A DNA stretch of 64,000 nucleotides from NCBI GenBank assembly GCA_946965045.2, contig OX337235.1, forward strand, positions 558,001 to 622,000, in the 5' to 3' direction. Position numbers and translations under genes: made by a program. This document shows positions 1 to 39,133 of this stretch, in pieces. This DNA is from Epithemia pelagica. Taxonomy: Eukaryota > Protista > Bacillariophyta. Within the stretch, counting starts at the first letter, position 1. The number at the start of each line of letters is the position of its first letter. The notes under the pieces were generated by a model. The model had not been told where the DNA came from. It made no database searches and was given only the letters and a program-made list of their open reading frames with translations.

Positions 1-3000
1 ATAGAAGTCGCTTGTCGATGTTTCGAACGATATGCCATCGCCCACTTCGTCAAACTTGAAGTTAGACTCGCCATATACACTTGGAATGTAGACAAACCGA
101 TCAATTCCATACTTGGCCAAAACCTCTCTCTCGTAGAGACCCATTGCAGCGATGGTGCCTGATACACCCAGAATCCGTTTCGGTGATATGTTTGCATAGG
201 AGAACTGTCCGCATGAAATTGTCATTGATAGAACCTGCGCAAGCGTCAAATCTACATCACGTAATTTTCCTTTATCGGCTTCTTGAAGGTACGCAAACAT
301 CGTACAATATCCGTACGTCACATCGTATTCATACGTATCCATGATCTTGTACCCAATCCGATTTGAAATGGGGTCAAGGCGGTAGCGCGGTTCGTCGTTC
401 ACTTTTTTGACTTGGCTCATCATCAACACAATCTCATTGTCGATGATATCAGTGAACCTGGGGTATTTTCTGATCAAGTTTCGATAAGGCCCAGTAGCCT
501 TGACGTCGGATAGCCGAAGCTGGCCGCCGACGCTTTTATGTTCAACCCAAATATATTGAAGAATTTCAGTAACTTCTGTATCTCGAAGCTTCGCACCTTG
601 GTTGTATGTCTGTCCGTAGAAGTCCGAGCCAAAGAACACATCAAGCTCGTCAACAAGCAAGATTTCTTCCTCCTCTGGTTGTTCTCGTCTCCTTCCCGTC
701 TGTACTAGTTCGCCTCGTAGCATACTTTCGGTCATCCGACGTATGTCACCTTTCGCGGAGATGGTTTCCTCAGAAAATGTTGTTATCTTGGAGTAGTTGA
801 TGCGATCCAATAACTTGAAGATTGCGAATAGATCTTTAAAGAGCTCATAGTCACGAGTCGAAAGATAATCACTGTAGCAAACGCAGCGGACTCGATAGCC
901 AAGTAGAGCAAGAACGGTAGCAGTCGCGCCTAGAATAAGCGATTTCCCTTCTCCCGTTCGCACCTGCATAGCCTGGCTTTCCAACGAGAAACTCGTGGGC
1001 TCACCACATCCCAGCATACACAACAGCGTGAAGACTTGGATGTTATGAGGCTTCATCAATATCTTATTTCCCAGTCTTTCGTCCTCGATGCGGTTATAGC
1101 TAGTGCCAGATTTCAGAACAGTGAATACTGCAAACACACCTGCAAGGATCATGGGTATTTTCTTTTTCACCTCTGGACGCCAGCCTCCGATACAGTTCAC
1201 CGGTTTGAGTTCATTCGACATTCTGGTAACAATTTCAACAAGCCCGCTAGTATCAGCGTCATGTGGCAAAAATGTAGCAAGAAAGTTTTTAAAGGTCTCC
1301 TCGACCGCGAAGAAATTTGATAAAAGTTCATTTGAGTCAACAGAGAAATTGGCTGCCATATTCTCGGTGCAAGGTTTCACCTGAATTTGACGCACTGTGT
1401 CCTCACACGGTTTCTGACATGTTTCTTCATTCCAAACCATCGTGATCACCTCCCTAAAGTGGCTGAATTCGCCTAAATTCATGTGGCAAATGCGATTTTC
1501 GTCATCACTTGCATCTTGATCACCACGCTGCAATGATAACCCTAGCTCGAACAAGAAACTAGGGCCCCATCCGTACTGGAGACATGACTCTAACGAAGTA
1601 GACATTGTCAATTTGGTCAGTTCTCGGAAGTGTTGGAGATCGTCCATAACGGATCCCAGTCGGACAAGGTTTCTTCGAAAACCGATAACTTTTTGGTTTC
1701 CATTTGGATATTTTGCCAGCACCTGATGCAAACAATCTCCCAGTGACTCAATGCCCGATTCAATTTTGCTCAAAATTCCGGTCGTCCATGATGTTGGGAA
1801 AATATCAGCATGTGATTTCAAGCTAGTTTCAATTTTCTTCAAATCGATGATACTGTCGTTCAAAGCTTTGTATTTATGTTCTGCCCAGTTTGTTTCGACA
1901 TCAACTCTCACCCCATCCACATATTCTTTTACCAATCTAACGACTGCGTCATAAGTGGATCTTGATTCGTAAAGTGGTTCAACAAGGTCATCCAGCAACC
2001 GCAGGTCATGTAGCTTGAAAAGAAGATCGTCAATAAGGTCGTATCGTTGATCTCGTAGATATTCCTGAGCTTGCTCTCGCAGGCGAGTTCCCACGCCTCG
2101 AACTTGACTATCAAAGGGCTCACATCTACGACTACAGCGGCGATATTCCGCTCTGAGTAAACGAGTCCCGGCTTCTTCTTTGTCTCCGAGTTTTGCAGCG
2201 TTGAAGTATGAACTATTTCCAGGAACACACCGACTTTCAGCAGCGCATTCAATCAATCGCTGTTGAGTGGCTTCAATCTCAGCTAAAGAAGCTGAAGGAA
2301 ACAACCCCAAAAAAAAACAATCTTGTACACGCGTGGGCTCGCGGCCACAGCTGAAGTGATCAAACCAAAGAGAGTTAATTTTTTTGAGCCATGTATCAAC
2401 CACAAGACAATCATCTCTTTTTATCTCCTCAGAAAGGAGCACGAATCTTTCCACGAAAAAACAGATTTTTGTCCTCACAAGTTCAACCTGTTCCTTTATC
2501 TCTCTGAAATCCGTGGAGTTCATAAATAGCTTTTCCAAGTACGAAATTTTGTCCCGTGCCTTCGAGAAAACCAACTCATGCACCTTTGTCATACTCGCTT
2601 TGCCTGCATCAGATCCAGCAATCCAAGGAAGTTTGCGCACAAAATCGAGGTAAACAGGGAAAAGCGGGTCAAAGTTGTGAACGTCTCCATCTCTCAACGT
2701 ATCTTGAGCTTCGTGGCACAAAAGCAAAAACGTTTCCCGAGCAAGTCGCTCTAAATTCTGTCTCTTAGCGGATGAGTCGGCAATGTGCTTTCCCACTTTG
2801 ATTTCAATGAGACGGAGTTGATCAAAACTCGCCCGGGCAACGGCGAGATTTGTCCTAGTCTTTAGCGCATTTTTGCCATCTTCGAAGAATCGAATAACCT
2901 TTCGTTGCAGTTTGTCGCCGAGCCTGTTGTATGATTTGTCCCTGCCAAAACCTATTACGCCTGTCCACCATTGCGGATGCAAGCGTTCCAGTCTGTCTGC

Positions 3001-6000
3001 CCAAGCATTGAGCTTCGTTTCAGCAGTTGAACCTTCGTACTCAAGGTAATTGTCTTGCTGGATTTTCATCGAAAGCCATTCGTCACGCTGTCGTGTTGGA
3101 TCAAACTGAAGAATAGATGACACAATATGATTTCGTAAGCCAGAATTCAATTGGTGGATCAAACAGTCCATCCAGGAAATGGCCTCATCGAAACAATGGT
3201 GTTCTTCCACAGTACTCAAAATCCTGGTGTGGAAATCGTTTATTTCTCGGGTGAGGAGGACAACGGCGTTAGAGTAGTGAGCGGCCAGCTCGTCCAGCCG
3301 TGGTGTTTGGCAGTCACGAGCTTCTTGCAAGTTGTTGAGTTTTTTTAATAACAAGCTGCCTTTTTGTAGACCCGACGCGACAAAGTCGTCTACACTCTGC
3401 ATGACAGAGGTAAGCGCATCATCGAACTTTGAAAAAGCCTTAGTTTTGTTTTCCATGACATCTTTTGCAATGCAGCGAACGATAGTGGGGTGTAACAACT
3501 CGGTGATGTCCGATTTAAATCTTCCCAGCAAGACAAAATTTGAACACTTTGCCGCTGAATTCATTTCCCTCAGTTTGTTCGCAAAGGTGCTCGTCAACTG
3601 GTTGTTCAGGTTGTCGAGGGATCTTCGCAAAGAATGCCCTAGTTCACGAAGAAATCCTTGGAGTTTTCTTAGAGCTAGATCAAGAACTTCGATGATCACA
3701 GCAATTTCTTCTACCGTGCTCCTTGTGATAGCACTAATGGCGATTTGTCGATGCGCTCTATTCGCGAGATTGAAGAGAGACTCCGAAATCAGTTTACGGA
3801 AGCGAGAGACCTGATTTCCTCGTCCATTGTTGACATATTGTTCCACCAAATTAATCATTCCGGTGTAATCTTCGGCTTGCACTAGACTACGTATATCGGC
3901 ACCAACTCCAGTTTGATTTTGCTGTTGAAGATCTCGGAACATGCGTAATTTTGCACTTGCCTTGTGGTCAATGAATCGATCAATAACTGTGGCGTTCTCA
4001 AACAAGTTGATCTGACTGTTCAATCCTTTCCAGTCAACGGGCTCTTTAGAAGAGAGCTTCTGAAGTTCAGCTGCATGGTTTTCAACAGCAACGAGGGCTT
4101 TACGCTTCAACTCGGTAAAATCGTAAATGCACGTCACCTGATGGCTTGCAAGCGTTTCAGCGGCAGCTAATGAGAACTCCTTGGCCCGATATCGGCCCTT
4201 GACTTCCATTACCGATCCTAGCTGATCCGCAAAATGAGAAACGGTTCCAAGAATCAAATTGTAGCTATGATGGAGTTTCTCCTTGCATTTTGAATGGAGA
4301 GACATGACATCTTTGATTTCACCAAAACGGATCTCGATTTGTCTCCCCGCATTACATAGCGAACCATGTAGCTCTGTAGTCATGCCACCACATTCGTTCG
4401 TGTCTAATTGCTTCTTCCACTCCTTCGAAACCTTTTGCCAGATGACAAGATCGTCGTTCCCTCGTTTCTCAATTTTTCCAGCGTACTCTAATAATTGCGA
4501 AACAACATGACCCTCCCATGCAGTGAGCTCGTCGTCAAAAGCAATAATCTGAGAAAGCTCTGGAAGTAACCAAGTCCGAAGCTGATTGATGGAGGAAGAA
4601 GAATTATTCGTGTCTTGAAGTAAATCCGTGAGATGGCTATTCAAAGACGTTGAAATCAAATCGATTCGTTGACGGTATATGCTCTTCATGGAATGAAGTG
4701 AGTCAATAACGGAACATGCTCCGGGTGAACCGAACTCATCAAACCATTCAACGTTAGAAACTGAGGAGACATACTCCGCGTCAAGACATCCATTTGTGAA
4801 CCCTTTAGCGAACGTTTCTTCGGCTCTTCTTCTTGACGCGTTAATCAATAAAGTTATTTCAGCCATGACAGCATCTATGACAGACTTATAGTTCGAACGT
4901 ATTCCTTTCCATTCATCTCCTTGCAGGTCAGCAAAAAGGTCAACACTGGCCCGGAGATCATAAACACGTTGTTTCATCGTAGAGTCGCGAACATTACATA
5001 TCTTTTTCATCGAATCTGCCTCTAGTGCAAACTGTTCAGTAACAATACCGGCAAGCTGATCAAGCTTAACTTCCAATGCATCAATAAAAAAGGAAATGCC
5101 TGATGTTCGTTCAGCTGATCCCTTAGGAACTCGAGAGGATGAGCCTTTTGTGAAAGTGAGAAAAGGTTTTGCTGCTGCAAGTTAACCGGTCTATCGAGAG
5201 ACGGGGAATCACGAAGTGCTTTCATTCTCCTGTTAGCTTTGGCTCTTGCTGTATTAATCAAATCGACTGGCACTTCATGCATGGAAAGGTAACTTGAACG
5301 GCCTGAAATCGTTTCAAGGAGAAAAATACCTCGAACATAGCTCTGAATACATTCGTGTGGGACCATTGCAAGCTTCTCTGGATCGAATTCAGAGACTTCA
5401 TTACATGTCTCTTCAATCATGGATATGAATTTTGTTCGCGATGCATAATATAGAGGCTCAAGCTGTTCAAAGCTTTCAGCCCATAAGCGTAAGTTATGAA
5501 GAACAACGTGAAAGTTGTCGTAGTCGTCTTCTTTGGCCGTCTGGTCGTGGAAAGCGTGGACTTCATGTAGGATGTGTCCCCATGATTGGTCAGCCCGTAT
5601 ATCCGCTGACGGAACGAATCTGCCACAATGCCTTCTTCAGACAGTCAATGTTTGAGGTTGCAAACTTCATATTCGTCGAGGTGACTCGGGATGTTTCAGT
5701 TTCAACAATCTTGCAAAGGCGACGAGCATACTGAGTGAACAACCTCTCCGATTCCGCCACTGCATGGTGAACCGATTCAATTTCGATGTTATTAGAAAAG
5801 AAACGAAGGATTTCAGAAATAGCCCGCATGTCATTAACTTTGAAGTGTACTGGGTCGTTCAACAAAACCTGCAGCTTGCGCACCATCGAATTTAGTTCTG
5901 ACTCAAACTTCATTGAAAGATGCTGTGGCAGAACGCAAGTTCTTGAGGTAAACTTGTCTTCAAATGGTTTCATATTTTCTATTGTTAACCGAAGTTGAGC

Positions 6001-8586
6001 AAAATCCGTCTCCGTAGGATGGAGAATATCGACAATATGGTAGCGACGTTTGTTCGGATCGGTTTTACGCTTTCTCAAACATTTCACCATGTGGTCGACG
6101 ATAGTCGCCACATCACGATCATTCCTGCTAGTGCCGTTCAGGATCTGAACTAATTCTTCCAAGAGGAAATCTCGTGCATCTTGAATTTCTTCCGGAAATT
6201 TCTTAATCTGGTTGGTATGAGTGAAAAAGAAAGCGAAGCTTGCTTTATGGGACGAAAAATCTTGGACAAAGCTCCTTGTTAATCTGAGAACGGCTCTCAT
6301 CGAACCTCCTCGGTCCTCGAGCAACGACGTGTAGTTGATCAAAATTACAAACCGCAAACTTTTGCACCTTTTGACCACATGGTTTTTCATAACGGACGTG
6401 GCAACATCGACCTCCTGGCCACTCGTATCTTCAAACCCCGGGGAGTCAACAAAAGCAATCTGTGTATTCTTCGTTGTCGTTGATGTCAGGTACGCACGAA
6501 GGCATTTCGTTACTGACTCTTTACTGTGACCAATTTCAAACCCCGTCATCTCATCCTCAGCCTCGAACACGTCTTTCCCCACTGTCTGGCCCACATTAGT
6601 GATAGTCTTTCTCGTTAACTGACGGAGAGAAATACCGTTGATGAAGGTTGATTTGCCGCTCCCAGTCTTTCCCACAACCAAGACCACATCCCTGTTTGAA
6701 ACTTGTTCAAGGGCGGGTAGTCCGTTCTCGATGCATTCTCGCAAAAGTCCCATGTCGAAAGGCATCGAAATCGTGTATGTACCCAAGTCCCAACCATGTG
6801 GAATTCCACAATTACTTGATTCTGATTCGCTATCGGACCATCCGTCCTCAAGACTTCCCTCGTGCTCTCCGTGCACAGTGACTTCTATCTCCTCTATGAT
6901 AGATACTTCGTTCCCAGGTTGGGATGTTGGCGTTGAAGTTAACGGAATCACCTCCGTGTGAACACCGGTGACAGGAGCTTCTTGCACCGGATCCCCAGCT
7001 ACGCCGGAACTTTTGGGAAACACTGCATCCATGTTGACCAATCCATTCGGCGTTGACACCTCCCCCGCTTCAGCGAGAGCAACATTGAGGTTGCCGGGCT
7101 CCAAATGTCCGTCATCGCCGTTGTGATAAACAATATCTCGCTTCGACGTGAGAGCGTGCTGGTCTTCCGCACCTTTGTGCTGGACTTTTTGGGGATCAAA
7201 AACTACCGGTTTTTCCTGGGTAACCCACGCCCAACTCAGAGATTCAGGCTCAGCTGCAGCTTCGACGGCCGGTAAGACCACAGACGAATTGGGGCTGCTT
7301 TTAACAGCCTGGATTTTCCCATGTCCTCCAACATCAACATTACAAGACTGTTCATGACCAATCCTCAAGCCTTGGATTTCAGTTCCAGTTCCATCCGTAG
7401 CCTCAATCTCTTGCAAACCTTCCAATACAATCTCAGAGCGGGTGGATGACACGGCTTTTTCAGTCTCCTCGGATTGCTTCTCGGTACTAGTCCCGTCGTT
7501 ACTCACGCGTTCTGTCGCTTTTGTCAAACAGGCCAGATGGTCTTTGTGTGCCATCGCTCCACCACGAGCTTCGTGTTCGATTGCATCGGCAGTCGCTGGA
7601 GGCGGAACTTGATCGATGTTCGTCGAATCGGGCATTCCAAGTGAGTGCGCTTCAGTCATCGATTTTTCTTGATGCTTACCGGCATTCTCCGCACCGGCAA
7701 GACAAGTCCCTCCTACTGTTTTGTTCATCAGTGCTTCCTTTTTAGATTTCTCATTCGACCAGGGCTCCTCCAACGTCATCGGGTTTGTACCAAGTTCACC
7801 GGGAGTACCATCGTCGTTATCATGGTTCCAAACTTGAGGAGCCGGCTGCAACCCATCCTGTTCAGAGCAAAAGGTTTCCTTCGGCATGAGGACAACACTA
7901 CCCTCTACAGTCTCAATATGGTTTGGATCTCCGTGAGCCCAATCTTCACCATCCAGTTCCTTGCGGTACCCGGAATCAACAACCAAAACTTCCTCCTTTT
8001 CCTGGATAAAACCAGTCTTGGGTACATTCACAGTGCTGACGCCAACTTGATCCACATCCATTGCTAGCACTGTCTGGCAAAGATGCCCGTTTTCAACAAG
8101 CACTTTTGCTGGAGTGGGCGAATCAATCTCCATCTGCACGGGGTGCTTCCATGCCGGACCCTTGGCCGTTTTCTTCGGGATCTCCTTCTGGTCACCCTCC
8201 ATCACATCGTTGCCAAGAGGCGCTTCCTTCAATCCAACCTTGTTCCACGACAACAACTCATGCCCCTCGCAACCATCACCACCACCAAGTCCAGCATCAC
8301 CATCAGATGCCTTGGCACCAGACATTTCCATCGTTTCCCAATCATTACCATCCGAACGGATCGGGGGTTTTGATTGGCCCACAATGGACTTACAATCAAC
8401 TGTTTCCAACACACCTTTTCCACCGTCTTTCTCCTCTACTTTCATCGTCACATCACCGCCAACCGTCGTAGCCGTGTCCTCCGTACTGGACAAGTCGTCA
8501 TCGTCGAGGCCGACATGGAGGAACGAGTTCTTCAACTTCATGATACGAGGATGCGTCGAATGTACTTTGCATATCTCTTCACACAC
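1..8586 (-). pseudogene. Paralog A of the giant GTPase / SecA-like ATPase family; frameshifted (pseudogene or assembly indels); runs off the left edge
   Basis: The 998-aa ORF 8586-5590 has G1 VGKTGSGKST, DSPG and THTN. After a +1 shift near 5600 the frame HEVHAFHDQT...MIEETCNEV...AHPLEFLRDQLNEHQAFP aligns with paralog C. After a -1 shift at the A6 run (5086-5091) the original frame resumes. Spot translations in that frame give QVRTGEGKS (about 940-965) and FKFDEVGDGISFETSTSDFY (1-60). No stop-terminated minus-strand ORF is listed in that frame, which is consistent with it running off the edge. Confidence 0.85.
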
Positions 8587-9893: not shown

Positions 9894-12800
9894 TTACATG
9901 AATTCCAGGGCAAGTTTGTTGCCAACGGCCTCGGAGACTCGTTTTCCGATTTCGGCCTCGAGGAGCCCAGCCACATTTGCACCACCCGCGATCTCTTGAA
10001 AAACTTTCGCAAGGTCGGACGTATCCGTACTTGCCTTAACCTTACCAATCGGTGAAGCAGCGGCTATTTGTCCGAGCTGAGATTGGTCAGCATAGGGGCT
10101 GAATGCAATCACATGCAGCTCAAGATCACTGCCAGTAAGTGCCTTGATATCATTGTTCAAATCAGAGAAATGCGATGCCGCTTGCGGAGCATCGTTTGCG
10201 CAACCATCGCTCATGAAGACAATAACAGGAACATGCGTCGATGGAGAAGCCTTAGCCACATTGTAGGCACTCAGTGCAGCTGGACTGAAGTTCGTTCCGC
10301 CATCATGATAGTAGAGATCTTTCGGCGCCGATCCGATGGGGCTTAGGCTCACCGTGACTTCGGCTTCATGTGAAAACTGGACAACAGACACAAGGTCGGA
10401 CTCGCACTGATACTGCTGGCGGCGCGCGATGTACTGATTGTATGCGATCACAACTCCAGACCAGTCATCGTACATAGAACCTGACTGGTCAAGAACGAAA
10501 ATGATGTGTCGATCGTAGTTCACCGATGGATCATGAGCACCTGGATGTTTGGAAGTAGGTACGAGAGGGATAGTCGTCACCTCACGTTGGTCCTTATTAC
10601 GGGGATGATCTCGGTATGTCTGGGATAATTCCTGCTCTGTCTTCAACGTGGACGCAGGGTTGAATGAACACATGAACAAATCAATCCCCTTGGAAACAAG
10701 TCCATCAACAACACTATCAACCGTCAATCCAAGAGGATGCCGTGAAGAATAGTTGTCTGAATTCTGACCACTCGCAAAACCTGGATCCGTCAAACCATGT
10801 GCCGCGGCGTCCGTGAGAACCATTATGAACTTGAGTCTTGAGGCCCAGTCTCCCGGGCCGCTCCAATGCGCACACCGATCAAGAGCTCCTAGAATATCTT
10901 CCGCCAAGTCGCCACCACCTGAAGAATGTTTAGTATTACGTTCCACAAAACGAATTGCCTCGTCGGCGCTGTCGGTGAAATGGCTCTTTGAGTGCCATGT
11001 ACTTTCTGTGAATTGCTTCGCCTCGTCATCTATGTCGCGAAAAGCCATAACTGCAGTACGGAATGTAAACTCCGTGTCAGGGTAGTTGGCCTGGAGACGC
11101 CCCATGACTGCTCCCCGCTTGTCAATCAGTGTGTGGATAGTCGCCGCAATGGCAGACTTGTACGGCCCCATGCTTCCGGTGACATCAATCAAAAACGCGA
11201 TGTCAATATCAGTGTTTGCAGCGAGTGCCTGTGTTTTCATTGAAAAATATAACTCTTTGAATAAGTCCTGTGCTTTCCGCGAGTCACCTTGGATGAGAGC
11301 GTCAAAGTACAGGTTTGTGTTCTGGTCTTTCTCGGTGGCGTCTTGGAGATTCACGTCCATCACATGACAATGACTTTCATGTTTCTTCGCACGGGCACTG
11401 GAAAGCCATTCATACATATCCTTTTTGGCAACAGTGTCTTTCGCGCCAATCTCAACGCCAAAATGAGTTTTCAGGTCAGATTCAAGCAATACCATTTGAT
11501 AGGATCCTTCCTTTCCTTGTCGAGATGTTCGTCCTCGGATCTGGAGTTCCTCGCTTAGAGCTTCCGACAAAAACGCTTGGACAACGTGCACGCCACCATT
11601 CTTATGCACCACATCGTCCTTGCAAAAGAAATCAGTGCCTCGACCAAACGAGGCCGTGCACAACGTGGTCTGACCAGCCGTCGCAGCTTTCTTGACAACA
11701 AACTCTTTGTCATTCGCACTCATATCCTCTGTCAGCAATCGAACTTGACGACGATCAAACTTCTTGAAGAACGAACTTCGTTTGTATTCTTGTAAGCGCA
11801 AATTATCATGAAAGAACACGATCGCAGCCCTCCTTTGTTTCGTCACATCGAGAATGACATCCGTGATTTTGTGAAAGAAGTCGCTAACAGATGGTTCCAC
11901 GAATATTCCATCTCCAGCCTTATCAAAATCGAAATTGGACTTCCCATAGACACTCGGAACGTAAATAAACCGTTCAATCCCATATTTCGCCAAAACATCG
12001 TGTTCATATTGACCCATTGCCGCAACGGTTCCAGAGACACCTAGAATTCGAAGCGGGCTGATACTTGCATAGGAAAACTGACCACATGACACGGGCATTG
12101 CAAGAACATTCGCCAGTCTTGTCTCGGCATTCTGCAGTTTTCCCTTGTCGGCCTCCTTGAGGTATGCAAACATCGTGCAGTATCCATAAGTAACATCGTA
12201 CTCGATTGTATCCATAACTTTGTACCCAATTCTCCCTGTCACTTCGTCAAGGTGGTATGGTTCCTCGTCAACCCTTTTAACTTGGTCAATCATCAACAAA
12301 ATTTCGTTATCGAAAAGATAAGTAAAGTCAGGATACTTTTTCACAAGATGCTGGTATGACTCGATGCCTTGTATATCCGCAAGTTTCAGTTTCTGTCCTA
12401 CTCGCTTGCTGTTGGTCCAAATGAACCTGAGTATCTCAGCGATTTCGTCTTCTTGCAACTGATAAACCTGATTATATGTTTGTCCGTAAAAGTCGGAGCC
12501 AAAGAAAACATCAAATTCATCCACAACCAAAATCTCCTCGTCAAGCCTGCCCTGCTCATTCTTTCCAGTCTTGCAGCCTCTTGAAGACAAACTTCCCTTC
12601 AATAGACTTTCTGTCAAGTTGCGGATGTCGCCTTTTGTTCTCGTACAATCTTCCGAAAGTTTCGTAATCTTGGAGTAAGTTATTCTATCGGCCAACTGGA
12701 AATACCCAAACAAATCCTTGAATAACTCAAAGTCACGATTTGAAAGATACTCGCTGTAGCAAACGCAGCGAACGCGGAAACCAAAAAGCGCCAGTACAAC

Positions 12801-15800
12801 TGCAGCGGCACCAAGAATCAGAGATTTTCCTTCACCGGTGCGGATCTGCATGACCTGGTTCTCAAGATTGGAACTTGTCGGATCACCACATCCAAACATG
12901 GACAGAATCGTTAGTACTTGGATGTTGTGCGGCTTCATCAGAATTTTCTCTCCTAGTTTGTCATTTCCAATTCGATTATACGTCGCAGAAGATTTGAGAA
13001 CCGTAAATACAGCGAACACACCTGCAAGTATCGACGGAAGATGCTCTTTCACCTCAGTTGTCCAACCGCCATCACACTCGATTGGCTTCAAACTGTTCGC
13101 ATATTTGACTACAGTTTGGACGAGTTCGTTGACAGCTGCATCTTCGTGCAGATATTCGGCCAAATACTGTTTGTACTTCTCTTCAAAGGACCAGAACTTC
13201 GTCAACAGCTCTTGCTGATCGATGTCTAACTCTTTCGTGCCAGAGCTACTTCGTTGCTCTCCTCGTATGTCGTGGACCGTATCATCCGCAGGCTTCTGGC
13301 ATGTCTCTTCGTTCCACACCATTGTCTGAACCTCCCTGAAATGGCTAAACTCTGCAACGATCATTTGACAAATGCGATTCTCATCATCATCTGCGTTTGC
13401 GTCGCCTCTCTGAAGACTAAGTCCAAGATCGAACAAGAAGCCATGGCCCCAATCAACGTTCAAACAGGCCTCAAGCACTGAATTCATGATTGTTTTTGTG
13501 AAATCTTTGAACCAAACCAATTCATCCAGTACAAATCCCATGCTTACAAACCATCGACGAAAGTCGGTCAACTTCTGGTATGCTGTCGCTTTAGAAACCA
13601 GAAAGCCACGTGCACGAGCGCCAAAATTTTCAATTTCGGATTCAACAGCACTAAAAACTCTGGTGTTCCAGGATGTTGGAAAAATGTCACTGTAGGACTT
13701 GAAACTAGCCTCCATTTGTTTCAGATCAGCAATGTTCTCATTCACAGACTTGTATTTACGTTCGGCCCAGTTGGTTTCAACGTCAATTCTCACTCCATCT
13801 ACGTGCTGCTTTACCAGATCGCTTATTGTGTTAACAATCGTGGTCGATTCCAGAGATGGCCGAACAATGTCATCTAAAACATGCAGGCCCCCGAGCTTGA
13901 ATAGAAGCTGCTCAACAAGGTCATATCTCTGTTGTCTCAAAAGATGTCTTGCCTTTTCCCGTAAACGATCACCAAGTGAGCGAATAATGTCATCAAACGG
14001 CTGTGCTGCACTCGGGATCACAGTATTCTCATCTTTGGTCAGTTCCGTGTATGCAATTTCAAGGTTCCGGAGAATGACTCTCAACTCAGCCTCGTTCCTG
14101 CAACCACCGGCAGTATCATTATTCTTGCTCAGTGCGCGATCTTTCTTCAGTTTATATGAATGCACGACCTCAGTTTGAGAAGCAGAAGGAGACAACTCAA
14201 GAACTGCAAAATGCTTTATCAGGTCAAGACGGCGCCCATTGCTAAAGTTAGCATAACAAAGCTTTCGCAGTTCCTCCAACGAACGATCCACATTGGCGTG
14301 ATGTGAACACTCCACTTCTTCATGCAACAACGCGAACCTATCAGCTATATATCCCCAATGTTTTCGCATATGCTCAACAGTTTCCTTGATTTTCCTGAAA
14401 TCAAACGAATTAACGAGTTCTTTCATGTCGGTAATCAATTTGTCCGCTGTCTCGAAGACCTTTTGATTGGTGGAAGAGAAGGCAGCTTTTCCACGAGGAG
14501 AACGCATTGTGAGCGGAATTTGGAGAACAAAATTCCGATATTCTGGCAAGAGTCTCTTGAATTCATTTGTACTGCCTGATTCCAGTGCCTGCTGTGCGTC
14601 ATCGCAGAGCTGGATGAACGAATCCAGGGCAATCTTCTGTAATTCATCTCGAGATTGAATGGACTTCGAAACATGTTTTCCCACCTTGCTACTGACCAAG
14701 TCCAACATCGCTATCTTTTCTTGAGCTGTTTCAAGATCCTTCGTTCTCAGAATTGCCGCCTCGCCTGAGGAAAAAATCCGTTGTATCTCCGCTTCGAGAT
14801 TCTTGCAAAGTCTCATGTATGAACTGTCACGCTCATTCTTCAGGAAGCCGGGTATCCACCACTTTGATTGTGGGTCTAATTTATTAAGAGAACGAGACCA
14901 TTTATCAAGTGTCGACGCTGCATCGAAGCCTTCGAATTCCAGATCCTTATCGTAGTCCCTTTTCTGAGAGCGCCATTCATGCAGTTGGGCTGTGAAGTCA
15001 AAGTCAAGTTTTATATGATCTTGCAGACCAAGGTTCAGTTGATGTTGTAGTGCAAGTATCCAAGCTATTGCTTCGTCAAAACACTGCCGTTCGACCACGG
15101 CCGTTGCAATGGCATGGTATTTCTCATTCAGCTGCATGGACAATGCTCTCGAAGTCTCTTGATATTTCAATGCAAGTTCCCCCAACTTTGGGGAATTGTG
15201 ATCATGAGCATGTTTCAAACTGATAAGGTCACCAATAAGACAAGATCCCTCTGTCAAACAAGAAGAAACAAACAGCGCTGAATGCTGCGAAACAGAATCA
15301 ACTGCTTTCTGGAATAGCGCCAAGGCACCGTGCATATCGACAGCAACACCTTTTTCGAGAAAGCCGAGAATAGACGAGTTCAAAAACGCGCTTATATTAA
15401 GCTGTCCGACACCAAGGCCAACGAAGTCCATTCGCTTGGAAGCAAGTTTCATTTGCTCAATATTTTTCCTTGCAATTTCATTGATAAGCTTTTTCAGTGC
15501 ACTTATCTCGCGGGGTAAGTACAGGCCACCATGAACAGCATACTCTGAGAGCTTGATCCTGGCTAATTCGAGGGACTCCATACGTCGTGTCACACGCTGA
15601 ATGATTTCTCTGTCGAGATTTGGGAGATGCATTTCGCAACGTGCCTTCTCTACAATATCAAGCATCATCGAGGAAACAAGTGTTTTTAGTTTGGGCAACG
15701 ACCGATGACCTTTGGGGTAGATATTGGACTGAAGAAGATCCACCACGCCTTGACAATCGTTTGCCTGAATCAGATCTTGAAGTTGACTATCCAGACCCTC

Positions 15801-18800
15801 TTCCTTTTGGACAAGTAGCCTTTGAAGAGAAACAAGACTTGTTGATCCTTCGTTGGAGGTGAATCGGTCAATCAAAGGAGACTTTGCAAACATTCTCATT
15901 TCGTTTTCAACGTCCTGGTGGACGGAATTCTCACCAATTAACTTTTGGACATAAGTCGCATGCTTCTCCACGGATGTTTTGGCTTTCGTCTTGAGCCGAT
16001 CAAGTCCTTTGAGAGGAATGTGCCGATACCTGGCGAGCTCCTCGGCCAAAGATAACGCATGATATTTAGCAAGATACCTTCCTTTACAGCCCACAACTAC
16101 TTCAAGGGACTGCGCAAATGTTTGAAAGCCCTCACAAGTTTCTTTAAGTATGCCTTGCTTGTCCGTTGAATTGAGCTTAGGGCAAATCTCGAATAAGGAT
16201 TTGAGTTTGCCAAGACTCGCGTCAACAGCAAAACCAGCTTCAGAGAGTAACTGTTGTTGACGATTCATATTCGCCGCTCTTGGTGTATTCAGGTCAATTT
16301 TCCATTGCTTCGCAGTATCTGTCCAGCTGTGAAGAAGCTCTGACGTGCGCGTTGTGTTGACTTTGACCTGGTCCAAAAGTTGAGCAAGCGCACTTGACTC
16401 GTAATGGGCATAGCTCCTGTCCAATTGGGATACTTGCTTTAACTCTGGAAATATAGAGTCTTTCAGAAGCTTGGAAGCTTGACTCCACTCGTTGGTGTCG
16501 TCAGTCAATTTTGACAAATGCAGGTTGGCCATATGGACGACAACATCAATTCTTTCTTGATATATTTTCCTCAGTTCACTCAAAGAGAAGACAACAAAGC
16601 ATCTATCAGGGGGGAGGTAATTGTCAAGCCAATCACAACCAGCGACGTTGGCAATCGCACTTCTGAATTTGTGGCATCCCTCTCGAAAACCATTCTCTCG
16701 AATTTCATTAGCTGAAAGCGTCAAGGTTTTTATCCTTGCCTCCAAAACGAACCCAATGGAAAGCATCATAGACTTATAGCCTGTTCTAATTTGCTCCCAG
16801 TATTCACCTTTCAGATCATCAAAGAGTGTAACCGTATCATGGAGTCGGCGGATTCGGTCATGCCAACGAGCATCGACATTAGCTCTTTTCTTTTCATACT
16901 GAGTAAATTTCTTGGAACAAAAGTTGAGAACAGATTCTCCCATCTGGTCTAGTCGTTTTGAAGATGCATCACTTAAACCTGGTATCTCGTCCAGTCTGCT
17001 CTCGGTGAGTTCTTGCAGGTGTTTTAAAGTACATACATGTCTTGCTGCAACAACCAAATCATCTTCTGTAGTGAGCTCGGACGTGCACCCTAGTCCATGA
17101 ACAGCTTCAATTATCTTCCTTCTTGATTCGTCCAAAGTTTTCCGAGCCAGCGAAATATTGATAGTGTGCTCCGATAATCGTGTGTTAAGTTTACACACGA
17201 GCTCGAGCATGCGCACGGCCTCCACAAAGCTCTGTATTACCTCGCGGGATGAAGACGTTGGATCCATCAGGTCAAATTTAGCAATAGTATTGCAACAACT
17301 GCGGAGTTGACGCACCAAATGACTCCGTGTTTCTTTGTAAAGAGTTGCGAACTCGCCAAAACCCTCTGACCAGAAGTACAGATTGTTAAGAACAACATGG
17401 AGGTGCTCAAAAGCAATTCCATCTTCGTTGACCGCATGAGTCTGGTAGTTTCGTACTTTGCGGTCGATGAATGATTCGAGTTCACCCACACTTCTACCAT
17501 TTTCAGCAAATTTGTTGAACACTTTCAACTGATCCAACGTATTCTTCAAAATCTCAACGTTGGAAGCACAAAATTTGGAATCAACCGATGTTCCCCGTTG
17601 AGTCTCCATTTCGACCACTCCAGACAAGGACTTGGTATAGGCGGCTACCACGGACGAACATTCTGCTACTTTTGTATGAACGACTTCAATGTCAACGAAT
17701 TTTTTCAAGAATTCAACATTTTCGCATAGTTCCATTGCTTCCTTTGCTTCAGCAGACGAGGAATCGTTCTTCAGTTGCCAACGTATTCGTTGCAACATAC
17801 TTTCCAGACCGGCAGTAAGTCTTAGCAGAAGTTGAGGTGTGAGACCGCAGTTGCCCGCGATGAACTTCTTGGTTACTGCTTTGCTTTCTTCCACTATTTC
17901 TTTCAACTCCGCGAAATCAGACTTCATTGGATGAAGAACATCCACAATTTTGTATCTGCGTTTATCTGGATCATAACCGCGCTTCTTCAAATAATCGATC
18001 ATGTGGTTAAGAATTTGCAAAACTTCGGTCTCTCGTTTGTTCGTCCCTGCTTTGGTGCGAATCAATTCTTTCAAAAGGGATTCTCTCGCACCTGGTAGGT
18101 CCTCTGGGACCTCTTTAATCTCATTAAGGTGGGTAAACAGAAACGTGAAGCTCGTTTTGTTTGCCTTGAAATCATCCACAAACAAATTGATGGTTTTGAG
18201 AAGAGCCCTCAAGGAACCTCCACGATCTTCCAGTAAGGACGTATAGTTGATGAGGAGAACAAATCGAATACTCTTGCATCTCTTCACCACTTGATTGATC
18301 ATAACCGACGTGGCAATGTCCACTTCGGGACCATCCGTATCCTCATGACCTGGTGCGTCCACGTAAACAGTCTTTCCTCCAGGAGCAAAACATCGAATGC
18401 ATTTCGTCATTGACTTCTTGGAATGTCCAATCTTAAAACCCGGGAGCTCATCCTTGACAACAAAAACTTGCTTTTCCACGGTCATACCAGAACTCGTATG
18501 ATTCACAACAGCTTGTTCGATCTCCTTCTGAGCAATACCATTGATGAAGCAAGTTTTCCCCGCTCCTGTTTTCCCCATAACAAGAACAACATTCTTGTTA
18601 TGAATTTCATCGAGGGCAGCTTCTCCATTCTTCATACAATCTCCCAACCATCCCACGTTGAACGAGAGGGCCTGTTGAGTACCTTCGTTATTGTCATGCT
18701 CTTCATCGATGGAAAGTTCAGAGTCGCTTTCTGACCAGCACCCAGCACAACTGTTCTCGTCATCTTCGTCTACATCATTGGTTGGCTTCGATACGGCGGT

Positions 18801-20702
18801 GTATGCTTTATGATCCGGTGCATCCTGTTTGAGGTTGTCAATGGTCGAGCCTACGGCCTTAGTACGATGATGAGACTGTTCTCGCTCTTCCAACCGTTCG
18901 CATCCGGTGTCCAATGTCCTTGCCCGGTCAGCTTCAGTGTCGCTTATGATGAAATGTTCAGGTATATCATCCTCTTGGTCTTGCAAGTCCATTGTTGCAG
19001 AGGAAGGACTGGGAGTCTCCCACGCCCATTTCCGTCCAACAGATGCAAGTCCTGCGCTGTCTCCGAAGTCGTCATAATGGGGTCGTGCCTCCTCGTTCAT
19101 TTGTTTGTTCGATACAACTCGTATATCTTTCGTAAGACCATGGCTACTAACGATTGGATCCACTGACGGTGCTGTACGCCGAGCCTTGAGTCCTTTACTT
19201 CCAGGACAATGTCCTTCTCCTCCAACGTTGACTGTTCCCAGAACAACTGATGGCCCTGCAACAGTACTTTCGACCTTGTCGAGAAGACTCCCATGCGGGA
19301 AGGCGGGGTTCATCGCATTGGTGAGCGGCGTTGTGCTACCTTCACCTCGTTGACTGGAAAGAATCTCTTCCTTCCCTGACTTCCTCTCAGAGGAAGAAAG
19401 AGGTGGCCAAACGGTCTTGTCTTCACGAGGCAAACCTCCTGCTCCACGACCAACAGATCCAGGTCCGTGTGCGAGTAGGGGCTTCATCTGCTGACGACTC
19501 TTCAGCGCTGTTTCATTAGTTTTGTCCTCACGGTTGGGTAAAGTCTTGGAGGGGATGGGCTCAGCCTTCTTCTTACTGCTCGCTGCCACGTCCGTCACAT
19601 CCCGCGCTTCTTGACCCTCAGGGTTCGGTTCTTGCAGCGAATATCCATCTCGGACGACTGAAGATTTGTCGGGTGACATTACAAGAGGAGGAGAAGGGAT
19701 TTCTTTGACAGAGATCCGATTCGTAGTGTTACTGCCAATCGAAAGACTCTTGTGATTTCCAAAAAATGGTCCTTCATATACAGAACCTGTTTTGGAATCG
19801 GATTGCATCGAAGCAGACTCCTGATCACGTGTCTTGGCAAAACCAATGTGATACTCGTGGGTCTGGTCGTTCGGTTCACTCTCTTTTTTCACCGATTCTG
19901 TAGGAGGTTCAACCCATCCATCGATATCCTTGCCCTCGCTATCTTCGGTCGAGAATGCAGTTTCCGTGTGGGTGCTGCCTTCGATAAGACCAACTTTGTC
20001 GGCGAGATCTTGGGTGCTCCGAGTTATCTTCTGGTATGAGGTAGCGAGAACGGAATCATCCTCATCTCCTCCTCCTTCTTCATCTCCTTCTTCTTCTTCA
20101 CAACTATTTTCTCCCTTGGGGAACTGCATGCTCAATGCAGTGTCCATCATCGTCGCTTCGATTCCTTCTTCCATGCTCCCACCATGCGTAAAGGACGGCT
20201 CTCGCTGCGATCCGTCCTTCTCCAGATCATGCTTGGTATTCCACTCATCCGACGGTCCCAGAACGGAATCATCCTCATCGTCTTCTTCTTCACTAACCTG
20301 ATCTTCCTTGTCGGGGAACGGCTTGGCCAACGAAGTGTCAACCTTCGTTTCGAATGGTTCTTCCATACCTTCACCACCATTTGGAAAAGACTGCTTCTTG
20401 GCAAACGATCCATTCTTCTCGGAAAGATCTTGATTTTGCTGGCCACTATTTCCCTTGGCAACATGCTTGTACAACGGAGTCTCCATTATGGTCTCAACTT
20501 CTCCTTCTCCACCTTCTTCCAGAAACGGCCTTGCGGATGCCTGCGTTCCAGTAGGAGATCCTCCTGGATTCGTAACGGCATTCGTCCGTGCCACACCGTT
20601 CGCCATTGTAGGAGGAGGTGTCACCTCCATCACCGTGTCTTCCCAACTCCCATCGTCGTCATCGCTGCCAAACAACGAACCTTCGTCTTCCAGTTGCGTC
20701 AT
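9894..20702 (-). CDS. Paralog B: 3602-aa protein with acidic disordered N-terminus, AIG1/septin-like GTPase, helical region, J-like segment, SecA-like ATPase and 2 vWA domains
   Basis: Uninterrupted ORF. GTPase motifs VMGKTGAGKT, DAPG, THLN. SecA motifs QIRTGEGKS, VDEFD, DEVTGR, LGVSGT, CTASFGRGTDF, GGVHV, QIRGRTSRQGKEGS. vWA MIDAS-type motifs FLIDVTGSM and FVLDQSGSM...GGT...MSDG. Confidence 0.93.
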   Translation of the reverse strand: MTQLEDEGSLFGSDDDDGSWEDTVMEVTPPPTMANGVARTNAVTNPGGSPTGTQASARPFLEEGGEGEVETIMETPLYKHVAKGNSGQQNQDLSEKNGSFAKKQSFPNGGEGMEEPFETKVDTSLAKPFPDKEDQVSEEEDDEDDSVLGPSDEWNTKHDLEKDGSQREPSFTHGGSMEEGIEATMMDTALSMQFPKGENSCEEEEGDEEGGGDEDDSVLATSYQKITRSTQDLADKVGLIEGSTHTETAFSTEDSEGKDIDGWVEPPTESVKKESEPNDQTHEYHIGFAKTRDQESASMQSDSKTGSVYEGPFFGNHKSLSIGSNTTNRISVKEIPSPPLVMSPDKSSVVRDGYSLQEPNPEGQEARDVTDVAASSKKKAEPIPSKTLPNREDKTNETALKSRQQMKPLLAHGPGSVGRGAGGLPREDKTVWPPLSSSERKSGKEEILSSQRGEGSTTPLTNAMNPAFPHGSLLDKVESTVAGPSVVLGTVNVGGEGHCPGSKGLKARRTAPSVDPIVSSHGLTKDIRVVSNKQMNEEARPHYDDFGDSAGLASVGRKWAWETPSPSSATMDLQDQEDDIPEHFIISDTEADRARTLDTGCERLEEREQSHHRTKAVGSTIDNLKQDAPDHKAYTAVSKPTNDVDEDDENSCAGCWSESDSELSIDEEHDNNEGTQQALSFNVGWLGDCMKNGEAALDEIHNKNVVLVMGKTGAGKTCFINGIAQKEIEQAVVNHTSSGMTVEKQVFVVKDELPGFKIGHSKKSMTKCIRCFAPGGKTVYVDAPGHEDTDGPEVDIATSVMINQVVKRCKSIRFVLLINYTSLLEDRGGSLRALLKTINLFVDDFKANKTSFTFLFTHLNEIKEVPEDLPGARESLLKELIRTKAGTNKRETEVLQILNHMIDYLKKRGYDPDKRRYKIVDVLHPMKSDFAELKEIVEESKAVTKKFIAGNCGLTPQLLLRLTAGLESMLQRIRWQLKNDSSSAEAKEAMELCENVEFLKKFVDIEVVHTKVAECSSVVAAYTKSLSGVVEMETQRGTSVDSKFCASNVEILKNTLDQLKVFNKFAENGRSVGELESFIDRKVRNYQTHAVNEDGIAFEHLHVVLNNLYFWSEGFGEFATLYKETRSHLVRQLRSCCNTIAKFDLMDPTSSSREVIQSFVEAVRMLELVCKLNTRLSEHTINISLARKTLDESRRKIIEAVHGLGCTSELTTEDDLVVAARHVCTLKHLQELTESRLDEIPGLSDASSKRLDQMGESVLNFCSKKFTQYEKKRANVDARWHDRIRRLHDTVTLFDDLKGEYWEQIRTGYKSMMLSIGFVLEARIKTLTLSANEIRENGFREGCHKFRSAIANVAGCDWLDNYLPPDRCFVVFSLSELRKIYQERIDVVVHMANLHLSKLTDDTNEWSQASKLLKDSIFPELKQVSQLDRSYAHYESSALAQLLDQVKVNTTRTSELLHSWTDTAKQWKIDLNTPRAANMNRQQQLLSEAGFAVDASLGKLKSLFEICPKLNSTDKQGILKETCEGFQTFAQSLEVVVGCKGRYLAKYHALSLAEELARYRHIPLKGLDRLKTKAKTSVEKHATYVQKLIGENSVHQDVENEMRMFAKSPLIDRFTSNEGSTSLVSLQRLLVQKEEGLDSQLQDLIQANDCQGVVDLLQSNIYPKGHRSLPKLKTLVSSMMLDIVEKARCEMHLPNLDREIIQRVTRRMESLELARIKLSEYAVHGGLYLPREISALKKLINEIARKNIEQMKLASKRMDFVGLGVGQLNISAFLNSSILGFLEKGVAVDMHGALALFQKAVDSVSQHSALFVSSCLTEGSCLIGDLISLKHAHDHNSPKLGELALKYQETSRALSMQLNEKYHAIATAVVERQCFDEAIAWILALQHQLNLGLQDHIKLDFDFTAQLHEWRSQKRDYDKDLEFEGFDAASTLDKWSRSLNKLDPQSKWWIPGFLKNERDSSYMRLCKNLEAEIQRIFSSGEAAILRTKDLETAQEKIAMLDLVSSKVGKHVSKSIQSRDELQKIALDSFIQLCDDAQQALESGSTNEFKRLLPEYRNFVLQIPLTMRSPRGKAAFSSTNQKVFETADKLITDMKELVNSFDFRKIKETVEHMRKHWGYIADRFALLHEEVECSHHANVDRSLEELRKLCYANFSNGRRLDLIKHFAVLELSPSASQTEVVHSYKLKKDRALSKNNDTAGGCRNEAELRVILRNLEIAYTELTKDENTVIPSAAQPFDDIIRSLGDRLREKARHLLRQQRYDLVEQLLFKLGGLHVLDDIVRPSLESTTIVNTISDLVKQHVDGVRIDVETNWAERKYKSVNENIADLKQMEASFKSYSDIFPTSWNTRVFSAVESEIENFGARARGFLVSKATAYQKLTDFRRWFVSMGFVLDELVWFKDFTKTIMNSVLEACLNVDWGHGFLFDLGLSLQRGDANADDDENRICQMIVAEFSHFREVQTMVWNEETCQKPADDTVHDIRGEQRSSSGTKELDIDQQELLTKFWSFEEKYKQYLAEYLHEDAAVNELVQTVVKYANSLKPIECDGGWTTEVKEHLPSILAGVFAVFTVLKSSATYNRIGNDKLGEKILMKPHNIQVLTILSMFGCGDPTSSNLENQVMQIRTGEGKSLILGAAAVVLALFGFRVRCVCYSEYLSNRDFELFKDLFGYFQLADRITYSKITKLSEDCTRTKGDIRNLTESLLKGSLSSRGCKTGKNEQGRLDEEILVVDEFDVFFGSDFYGQTYNQVYQLQEDEIAEILRFIWTNSKRVGQKLKLADIQGIESYQHLVKKYPDFTYLFDNEILLMIDQVKRVDEEPYHLDEVTGRIGYKVMDTIEYDVTYGYCTMFAYLKEADKGKLQNAETRLANVLAMPVSCGQFSYASISPLRILGVSGTVAAMGQYEHDVLAKYGIERFIYVPSVYGKSNFDFDKAGDGIFVEPSVSDFFHKITDVILDVTKQRRAAIVFFHDNLRLQEYKRSSFFKKFDRRQVRLLTEDMSANDKEFVVKKAATAGQTTLCTASFGRGTDFFCKDDVVHKNGGVHVVQAFLSEALSEELQIRGRTSRQGKEGSYQMVLLESDLKTHFGVEIGAKDTVAKKDMYEWLSSARAKKHESHCHVMDVNLQDATEKDQNTNLYFDALIQGDSRKAQDLFKELYFSMKTQALAANTDIDIAFLIDVTGSMGPYKSAIAATIHTLIDKRGAVMGRLQANYPDTEFTFRTAVMAFRDIDDEAKQFTESTWHSKSHFTDSADEAIRFVERNTKHSSGGGDLAEDILGALDRCAHWSGPGDWASRLKFIMVLTDAAAHGLTDPGFASGQNSDNYSSRHPLGLTVDSVVDGLVSKGIDLFMCSFNPASTLKTEQELSQTYRDHPRNKDQREVTTIPLVPTSKHPGAHDPSVNYDRHIIFVLDQSGSMYDDWSGVVIAYNQYIARRQQYQCESDLVSVVQFSHEAEVTVSLSPIGSAPKDLYYHDGGTNFSPAALSAYNVAKASPSTHVPVIVFMSDGCANDAPQAASHFSDLNNDIKALTGSDLELHVIAFSPYADQSQLGQIAAASPIGKVKASTDTSDLAKVFQEIAGGANVAGLLEAEIGKRVSEAVGNKLALEFM

Positions 20703-38100: not shown

Positions 38101-39133
38101 ACAGTCATCTGGTGGTGGTGATTTGGCCGAAGATATTCTAGGAGCTCTTGATCGCTCTGCAGAATGGAAGGGCCCAGGAGCTTGGACTTCAAGACTTAAG
38201 TTCATGATGGTTCTCACAGATGCGGCTGCACATGGGTTGGCCAATCCGGCAGTAGCAGGTGGTCCAAACGGAGACCACTATTCTTCACGGCATCCTCTTG
38301 GTTTGACCGCTCATAGTGTGATGGGTAAACTTGTTTCCAAGGGGATTGATCTGTTCATGTGTTCGTTCAACCCAATGGCAACATTGAAGACTGAAGAGGA
38401 ACTTTCCCAGACGTATCTCAACCACCCTAGCAATAAGGATCAACGTGAAGTGACAACTATCCCCCTAGTACCTACTTCCAAACAGTCAGGTGCTCACGAT
38501 CCAGTGAGCTACAATCGACACATTGTTTTTGTGCTGGATGAGTCAGGATCAATGTACAATGACTGGTCGGGGGTAGTGGTTGCTTACAATCAATACATTT
38601 CACGTCGCCGGCAGTACCAGTGCGACTCAGATCTCGTGTCGGTTGTCCAGTTTTCTAGTCAATCAAGAATCACAATTCAGCAGCAGAAAATCCAAGAGGC
38701 TCCGAAGTCCTTGCACTATCACAATGGTGGAACTCAGTTCAGTCCAGCTGCTCAGAATGCCTGTGCCTTGGCAAGGGGTACTCCGTCGACGCATGTACCA
38801 GTCATTGTCTTTATGAGTGATGGTTGCGCAGACGATGCTTCACAAGCAGCATCGTATTTTTCTTCACTTAATAATTACATCAAGGGACACACCGGCAGTG
38901 ATCTTGAGCTTCATGTAATTGCCTTCGGGTTGAATGCAAGTCAGGCTCAACTCAGTCAAATTGCCGCCGCGTCGCCGATTGGCAAGGTTCGCGCCAGTAC
39001 CGACACGGCGGACTTGTCCAAAGTCTTTGAAGAGATTGCGGGTGGTGCGAATGTGGCTGGACTCCTCGAGGCCGAGATTGGAAAACGAGTTTCGGAGGCC
39101 GTGGGCAACAAACTTGCCCTCGAATTCATGTAA
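29198..39133 (+). CDS. Paralog C of the giant GTPase / SecA-like / 2x vWA family (3311 codons including one in-frame TGA at 29765-29767)
   Basis: ORFs 29183-29767 and 29786-39133 are in the same frame, separated only by GAG TGA GAA; first ATG at 29198. Same motif set as B: IMGKTGAGKT, DSPG, QIRTGEGKS, VDEFD, GRGTDF, QIRGRTARQG, DVTGS, DESGS. Identical C-terminus LLEAEIGKRVSEAVGNKLALEFM. Confidence 0.9.

Follow-up and report, generated by a model that had tools for sequence, protein, structure and literature searches.

A predicted SecA-derived ATPase joined to GTPase, degenerate J and von Willebrand A domains in a giant soluble protein of the diatom Epithemia pelagica

We describe a gene, here called gene A, in a window of 64,000 nucleotides from the diatom Epithemia pelagica (GenBank assembly GCA_946965045.2, contig OX337235.1, positions 558,001 to 622,000); all coordinates below are positions in this window. 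Gene A codes for a soluble protein of 3602 residues that belongs to a conserved, unnamed family, and its sequence and structure models identify within it a SecA-class ATPase with two RecA-type domains and a full set of predicted catalytic motifs. The predicted motor is without those parts of SecA that couple it to SecY and the membrane, namely the wing domain, the two-helix finger and the tail. The explanation that we favor, with a probability of roughly 0.45, is that this combination of GTPase, J domain, SecA-like motor and von Willebrand factor A (vWA) domains acts as a soluble, ATP-driven clamp or remodeller of proteins in the cytosol.

The SecA-like motor

The SecA-like module occupies residues 2520–3165 (11208–13145, reverse strand) and consists of N-terminal helices, a first nucleotide-binding domain (NBD1) carrying an insertion, a second (NBD2), and two C-terminal helices. 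An earlier reading of the sequence, the original prediction, had treated the segment 9894–13000 as a unit, in which a complete SecA motor is fused to two vWA domains to form a self-contained polypeptide-pulling machine. That segment codes for residues 2568–3602, the last 1035 amino acids of the 3602-residue open reading frame (ORF), and is thus the C-terminal third of a larger gene. Nor is the machine self-contained, the motor being one module beside a GTPase, a dead J domain and a long stretch that is probably helical.

The SecA hallmark motifs named in the original prediction are all found in gene A and in SecA order: TGEGKS (residue 2622), DEFD (2728), GVSGT (2888), GRGTDF (3020) and, for the predicted QIRGRxxRQG, QIRGRTSRQG (3054). 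In an alignment of 70 motor sequences the residues of Walker A, Walker B and motifs III, V and VI are invariant, and motif Ia, which reads CYSEYLSxRD here and TVNDYLAxRD in SecA, is invariant or nearly so across the 70 relatives. The Pfam SecA_DEAD model matches the gene A protein above its gathering cut-off and P-loop_SecA matches it weakly, with both matching all 70 relatives; there are also weak Pfam DEAD and Helicase_C matches to the motor. The NCBIfam SecA and SecA2 models match two stretches of the protein, the best at 63.8 bits against cut-offs of 725–1493 bits. When the family profile is compared with the sequences in the PDB, SecA is found at 5e-19 and the first protein of another kind, the DEAD-box helicase Mss116, at 5.6e-4.

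The structure comparison with SecA that the original prediction called for gives a similar picture. The AF2 model of residues 2520–3170 has a predicted local distance difference test score (pLDDT) of 90.7 and a predicted template modelling score (pTM) of 0.86, and a Foldseek search with it returns SecA or SecA2 structures at all of ranks 1–36 (1.6e-18 to 2e-10). Matches outside SecA, among them RIG-I, MDA5 and DinG, start at 2e-7, the best helicase scoring 1.9e-7, and VIA-align also places SecA well before the nucleic-acid helicases. The motor therefore groups with SecA, and a grouping with nucleic-acid helicases that lack the preprotein-binding insertion, the outcome named beforehand as refuting, was not seen.

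The motor is nevertheless not a complete SecA, as had been proposed. After NBD2, SecA continues for well over 200 residues of scaffold, wing, two-helix finger and tail. In the gene A protein about 70 residues lie between NBD2 and vWA1, and they hold only two helices (residues 3093–3162; 11217–11426, reverse strand), the sole remnant of the SecA C-domain: one of 45 residues that resembles the scaffold helix (model positions 574–618) and a second at 622–643, after which vWA1 starts. The wing domain, two-helix finger and tail are absent, and neither SecA_SW (PF07516) nor SecA_PP_bind (PF01043) matches any of the 70 members. The gene A protein has no match to PF02810, the C-terminal linker and metal-binding domain, its own C-terminus consisting of vWA1, vWA2 and a helix. 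When the family profile is aligned to E. coli SecA with hhalign, the alignment covers NBD2 alone and stops at residue 621 of the 901; SecA subdomains were mapped at residue level from such aligned ranges and from secondary structure. A motor predicted to lack its SecY- and membrane-coupling parts is, we infer, not a membrane translocase.

NBD1 does carry an insertion where SecA has its preprotein cross-linking domain (PPXD), as the original prediction supposed. This insertion of 136 residues (2742–2877; 12072–12479, reverse strand) is made up, in the AF2 model, of stem strands, four helices, a hairpin and two further helices, and it is conserved to the same degree as the nucleotide-binding domains, with 90% identity to the paralogue gene B described below and 52–62% to distant diatoms. 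A DExTGR motif, which had been taken as a mark of the preprotein-binding domain, is not borne out: the DEVTGR of gene A (residue 2819) recurs only in gene B, its counterparts in other members read DQSTDR, DPISNR or D…dRIGYK, and the profile alignment places it in the hairpin ahead of the DEFTGR site of SecA. Judged on these alignments, we read the likeness to DEFTGR as a chance resemblance.

The vWA domains and C-terminal helix

The vWA pair begins about 95 residues past motif VI, and its motifs follow in order: DVTGSMG (3173), SGGGD (3261), LTDAAAHG (3296), DQSGSM (3405), DGGTNF (3467) and MSDGCA (3497). The first domain (vWA1, residues 3166–3392; 10527–11207, reverse strand) is divergent and resembles the integrin beta I type, with DVTGS, GGGDLAED and TDA at its metal ion-dependent adhesion site (MIDAS); its GGGDxAED loop, of the integrin-beta-like pattern GGxDxxED, can be aligned with the equivalent loop in integrin beta I domains. 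The second (vWA2, residues 3397–3575; 9978–10514, reverse strand) has a canonical MIDAS with DQSGS, GGT and SDG. Pfam recognizes vWA2 at 7.8e-14; vWA1 has no Pfam match in the whole-protein scan and gives matches below the cut-off when scanned as a separate segment, and in 17 of 22 relatives it is matched by VWA_4 (best 3.9e-6). The AF2 model of the pair (pLDDT 82.8) contains two alpha/beta domains, for which Foldseek finds first the tandem-vWA protein PTMP1 (1.4e-10 over 465 columns) and then collagen VI. Across 22 diatom sequences the MIDAS positions do not vary, with DxTxS, D and D in vWA1 and DxSxS, T and D in vWA2. The proposal of two vWA domains with MIDAS residues after the motor is upheld by the Pfam matches, the modelled folds and the residue conservation, and we regard both domains as real, with predicted MIDAS sites. 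vWA1 is found in diatom members only; those of other lineages have one vWA2-like domain right after the motor, or none.

The protein ends in a conserved amphipathic helix of 27 residues (3576–3602; 9897–9977, reverse strand; LLEAEIGKRVSEAV…LEFM). This segment, LLEAEIGKRVSEAVGNKLALEFM, is 100% identical in gene B and in the Epithemia protein P0002, and well conserved across diatoms, and it may be a docking or oligomerisation element.

Organization of gene A

Gene A is a single unbroken ORF on the reverse strand (9894–20702; stop codon 9894–9896), and the database gene model P0001 is identical to it. Its closest relatives are proteins of Epithemia clementina, at 71% identity. A reading of the gene as an artefact or pseudogene was rejected, the open frame extending over 10.8 kb with conserved motifs. 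From the N-terminus the order is an N-terminal region, a GTPase of GIMAP/septin type, about 1200 residues, a J segment, the SecA-derived ATPase, vWA1, vWA2 and the C-terminal helix. No signal peptide, targeting peptide or transmembrane segment was found, and the two windows of highest hydrophobicity belong to buried parts of NBD1. Identity to relatives is highest in the motor, its insertion, the GTPase and the vWA domains.

The N-terminal region (residues 1–680; 18663–20702, reverse strand) is acidic, rich in serine, proline and glycine, poorly conserved (26–37% identity to relatives) and, from its composition, probably disordered. It is followed by a P-loop GTPase of the GIMAP/AIG1-septin type (residues 690–930; 17913–18635, reverse strand) with GKTGAGKT, a switch-I threonine, DxPG and FTHxxE. 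Its specific matches are GIMAP4, septins and immunity-related GTPase (IRG) proteins; matches of the GTPase profile to midasin cover the P-loop only and were rejected. A homologous N-terminal GTPase region is present in 92 of 120 listed full-length relatives. The next segment (residues 931–2139; 14286–17912, reverse strand) has no Pfam match, and a search of the ESM Atlas with residues 940–2140 gave no usable match; with about 1200 residues, a low proline and glycine content and 22–45% identity to relatives, it is probably helical and is the least conserved of the folded parts.

The J segment (residues 2140–2225; 14028–14285, reverse strand) is degenerate. Most relatives carry HPDK there together with a Pfam DnaJ match, which is absent from the clade of gene A, and alignment against these HPDK-bearing relatives shows the HPD of gene A replaced (…DRALSKNND…). 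Genes A, B and C and the Epithemia paralogues all keep the homologous segment but have lost its HPD. HPD is needed for stimulation of Hsp70, and the J domain of gene A is therefore considered dead. The presence of HPD in the J domain of most relatives suggests clients that are proteins rather than nucleic acids.

Family distribution and relationships

The unnamed family has hundreds of members; it occurs widely among protists and also in bacteria living within them. Gene A has features characteristic of it: an N-terminal GTPase, a C-terminal SecA-like module and the motifs CYSEYLSxRD and QIxGRTxRQG. There are at least 148 full-length relatives (2000–3900 residues), all labelled hypothetical and some known from transcriptomes, and these are found in diatoms, a pelagophyte, the green alga Cymbomonas, rotifers, Arcella, Hexamita and Tetrahymena; dinoflagellate and further ciliate members are among the shorter matches. 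Some members have extra N-terminal modules, including protein kinase (PF07714/PF00069), ankyrin and leucine-rich repeat (LRR) domains (P0084, P0090 of Cymbomonas and P0119; about residues 437–456 in L005), and the family seems to have its variable 'input' end at the N-terminus.

Family-specific patterns, run against 185,579 bacterial and archaeal genomes, recovered 125 relatives. Those of the first tier (290–740 bits) are ORFs of about 2600–2900 residues in Legionellales, Coxiellaceae, Parachlamydiaceae, other Chlamydiae, Margulisbacteria and unclassified Gammaproteobacteria, with SecA_DEAD at the same relative position and an N-terminal GTPase match in two of the three checked. These three giant SecA-like proteins (L002:31-8808, L014:118-8523 and L005:25-7950) come from metagenome-assembled genomes of Legionellales, Pseudomonadota and Parachlamydiaceae and are candidates for whole-gene exchange between protists and intracellular bacteria. 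The second tier (100–155 bits) includes Legionella, Mycoavidus, Neisseriaceae, Francisella-like, Holosporaceae and Oscillospiraceae genomes; of five examined, four (Legionella, Mycoavidus, Neisseria and Oscillospiraceae) have a PPXD recognized by Pfam and none has SecA_SW. The family profile aligns with the second-tier alignment at an E value of 4e-50, collinear over module residues 66–619. The fifth, from the Holosporaceae bacterium 'Namur' (L025:1-8544), is a protein of more than 2800 residues in which at least 14 ankyrin-repeat stretches are followed by SecA_DEAD and P-loop_SecA and then by C-terminal tetratricopeptide repeats (TPRs); all five form part of a broader group of non-canonical SecA-like proteins of intracellular bacteria.

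A tree was computed with IQ-TREE in quick mode, with two canonical SecA rows as outgroup, 26 second-tier rows left out and long branches flagged. The eukaryotic and first-tier sequences form one clade (SH-aLRT 100, stem length 2.8), well apart from canonical SecA and with the second tier basal. First-tier bacterial sequences are mixed among those of rotifers, Arcella, Hexamita and ciliates; 21 algal sequences form a purely eukaryotic clade, and gene A lies within the diatoms.

Similarity to known systems

Bacterial and plastid SecA and SecA2 are the best match to the motor in both structure and sequence, at about 16% identity. They have in common with it NBD1 and NBD2 with SecA-type motifs I, Ia, II, III, V and VI, the N-terminal helices, an NBD1 insertion at the PPXD site and a long scaffold-like helix after NBD2. 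They differ in having a helical wing domain, a two-helix finger (IRA1), a C-terminal linker and a metal-binding domain, and in that the motor of gene A is embedded at residues 2520–3165 of a soluble eukaryotic protein of 3602 residues; the insertion of gene A, moreover, cannot be recognized as a PPXD from its sequence.

Literature searches for SecA with J and von Willebrand domains, for PF07517 and for SecA-like proteins returned no description of the eukaryotic family; bacterial cases came up in passing mentions only. Giant proteins of Omnitrophota and Actinobacteria are described as having SecA DEAD and preprotein-binding domains but neither scaffold nor wing (bioRxiv 10.1101/2023.11.21.568195), and giant toxins of actinobacteria as having a SecA-like ATPase (PMC8195603); GIMAP-type GTPase and SecA-like helicase-related domains are among the effector modules of Amoebophilus (PMC3482391), and lfa2470 of Legionella fallonii, 'SecA DEAD-like', is classed as eukaryote-like (PMC4256840). 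The bacterial giants resemble gene A in having a motor freed from the Sec machinery within huge multidomain proteins, without SecA_SW, but they keep a Pfam-recognized PPXD, and their partner domains are ankyrin, TPR, transmembrane and toxin domains rather than GTPase, J and vWA.

Two further comparisons concern architecture. The MoxR-vWA systems and midasin/Rea1 also combine, within one polypeptide or one system, an NTP-driven motor with a MIDAS-bearing vWA domain by which a substrate could be held, an analogy of logic and not homology, for their motor is an AAA+ ring and that of gene A is a monomeric two-RecA motor of the superfamily 2 (SF2)/SecA type; a Pfam scan finds no AAA+ domain in the gene A protein. 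Sacsin, RME-8 and Sec63 are giant or translocon-linked J-domain proteins, and Sec63 pairs its J domain with a helicase-derived Brl domain. They share with gene A a J domain that is part of a very large protein and lies beside an ATPase or helicase-like module; no sequence relationship of the three to gene A was found, and the J domain of gene A is without HPD besides.

Proposed function and alternatives

A protein-remodelling role in the cytosol is plausible for the gene A protein, judging from its domains. In the mechanism that we propose, the SecA-derived motor would use ATP to clamp or remodel a protein client, and the two MIDAS sites would dock acidic residues belonging to that client or to an adaptor. 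Hsp70 would have been brought in by the ancestral J domain, a link presumably lost in the diatom clade of gene A, and the GTPase might gate assembly, perhaps by dimerising. The pulling of polypeptides, as originally proposed, would be an inference by analogy with MoxR-vWA and midasin.

Several points weigh against this proposal. The gene A protein has no two-helix finger, with which SecA is believed to touch and push its chain. The insertion, compared alone with PPXD-bearing relatives and canonical SecA, gives an hhalign probability below 1%, so its homology to the PPXD is positional only and a polypeptide clamp is hypothetical. The J domain of gene A being dead, the Hsp70 argument covers the ancestor of the family and not gene A itself. 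E. coli SecA has a reported RNA-helicase activity in vitro, and SecA ancestry alone therefore does not exclude RNA. Finally, the remodeller function suggested for family members is drawn from sequences and models.

If the motor does act on polypeptides, a SecA engine would be able to work without SecY, and a motor outside the AAA+ class would join the protein-remodelling machines of eukaryotes. SecA is usually regarded as the translocase motor of bacteria and plastids, and the family of gene A, which is large and conserved, belongs neither with plastid SecA nor with the helicases; it has lost the channel-coupling parts and gained GTPase, J and MIDAS domains. Its whole-length homologues in amoeba-associated bacteria offer a second route to function, through effector biology. 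That the paralogues cluster and decay, and that intracellular bacteria have family members, hints at a process at the interface of host and symbiont or pathogen. We regard as rather unlikely a more extended version, in which a cytosolic SecA-derived remodeller of eukaryotes, different from the AAA+ unfoldases, would hold its client by MIDAS sites, ancestrally pass it to Hsp70 or receive it from Hsp70 by means of the J domain and be switched by the GIMAP-like GTPase, the whole machine having been exchanged between protists and Legionella-, Coxiella- and Chlamydia-like bacteria and marking the interface between host and invader.

A role in immunity or conflict, in which the GTPase would sense or switch, the motor and vWA domains would act on an invader or symbiont, and the bacterial copies would be mimics or decoys, is an unlikely but substantial alternative; it concerns biological role and is compatible with a remodelling mechanism. 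A GTPase of GIMAP, septin or IRG likeness would fit a switch of the kind found in GIMAP, IRG and the very large inducible GTPases, and the variable kinase, ankyrin and LRR additions at the N-termini of relatives point in the same direction, as do the patchy eukaryotic distribution and the concentration of homologues in Legionellales, Coxiellaceae, Chlamydiae and Margulisbacteria, interleaved with eukaryotes in the tree. At least three clustered paralogues, one disrupted, lie in the window, but paralogue turnover is also seen in ordinary gene families. PADLOC matched no known defence family, no death, TIR, nuclease or other effector domain is present, and a J domain is atypical of immune sensors.

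Remodelling of RNA or ribonucleoproteins (RNPs) would make the RecA pair an SF2 helicase or RNPase, with the vWA domains and GTPase serving RNP assembly as in midasin-driven ribosome maturation. The weak Pfam DEAD and Helicase_C matches and the absence of a SecA-specific C-domain are consistent with it, but SecA leads the helicases by about 11 orders of magnitude in Foldseek (top match 1.6e-18 against 1.9e-7) and by about 15 in the profile search, and motifs Ia and VI are of SecA type rather than PTRELA or HRxGRxGR. With no known RNA-binding domain in the protein, and a J domain that suggests protein clients, we consider this role improbable.

That gene A codes for a true Sec-type translocation ATPase feeding a SecY- or Sec61-like channel of plastid or endoplasmic reticulum is very improbable and largely rejected, the C-domain being absent: although SecA is the nearest solved family and one source automatically names a relative a 'chloroplast protein-translocase', the wing domain, two-helix finger and C-terminal tail are missing, the best score is 63.8 bits against NCBIfam SecA cut-offs of 725–1493, there is no targeting peptide or transmembrane segment, and the family forms a long-branched clade (stem length 2.8) far from canonical SecA.

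Paralogues and neighbouring genes

Genes A, B and C form a cluster of at least three paralogues in the window, one of them disrupted. Gene B (29786–39133, forward strand) is intact, codes for 3115 residues and is 64% identical to gene A, from which it is divergently oriented at a distance of about 9 kb. It has the same order of GTPase, dead J domain, SecA-like motor and two vWA domains, and carries YHLDEVTGRIGY. Gene C (1–8586, reverse strand) is about 43% identical to gene A and runs past the start of the window. Two changes of frame, near 5573–5614 and 5109–5223, interrupt it; the N-terminus and GTPase lie in an ORF of 998 residues (5590–8586) and the remainder in another frame, with the database model P0006 (2008 residues) corresponding to the downstream part only. 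Gene C may be a split gene or a pseudogene.

Elsewhere on the same contig of 629,299 bp, P0121 (979 residues) is 86% identical to the motor region of gene A and carries vWA domains. In the window, there are also two large ORFs, of 1315 and 419 residues, at 44744–50038 on the reverse strand.

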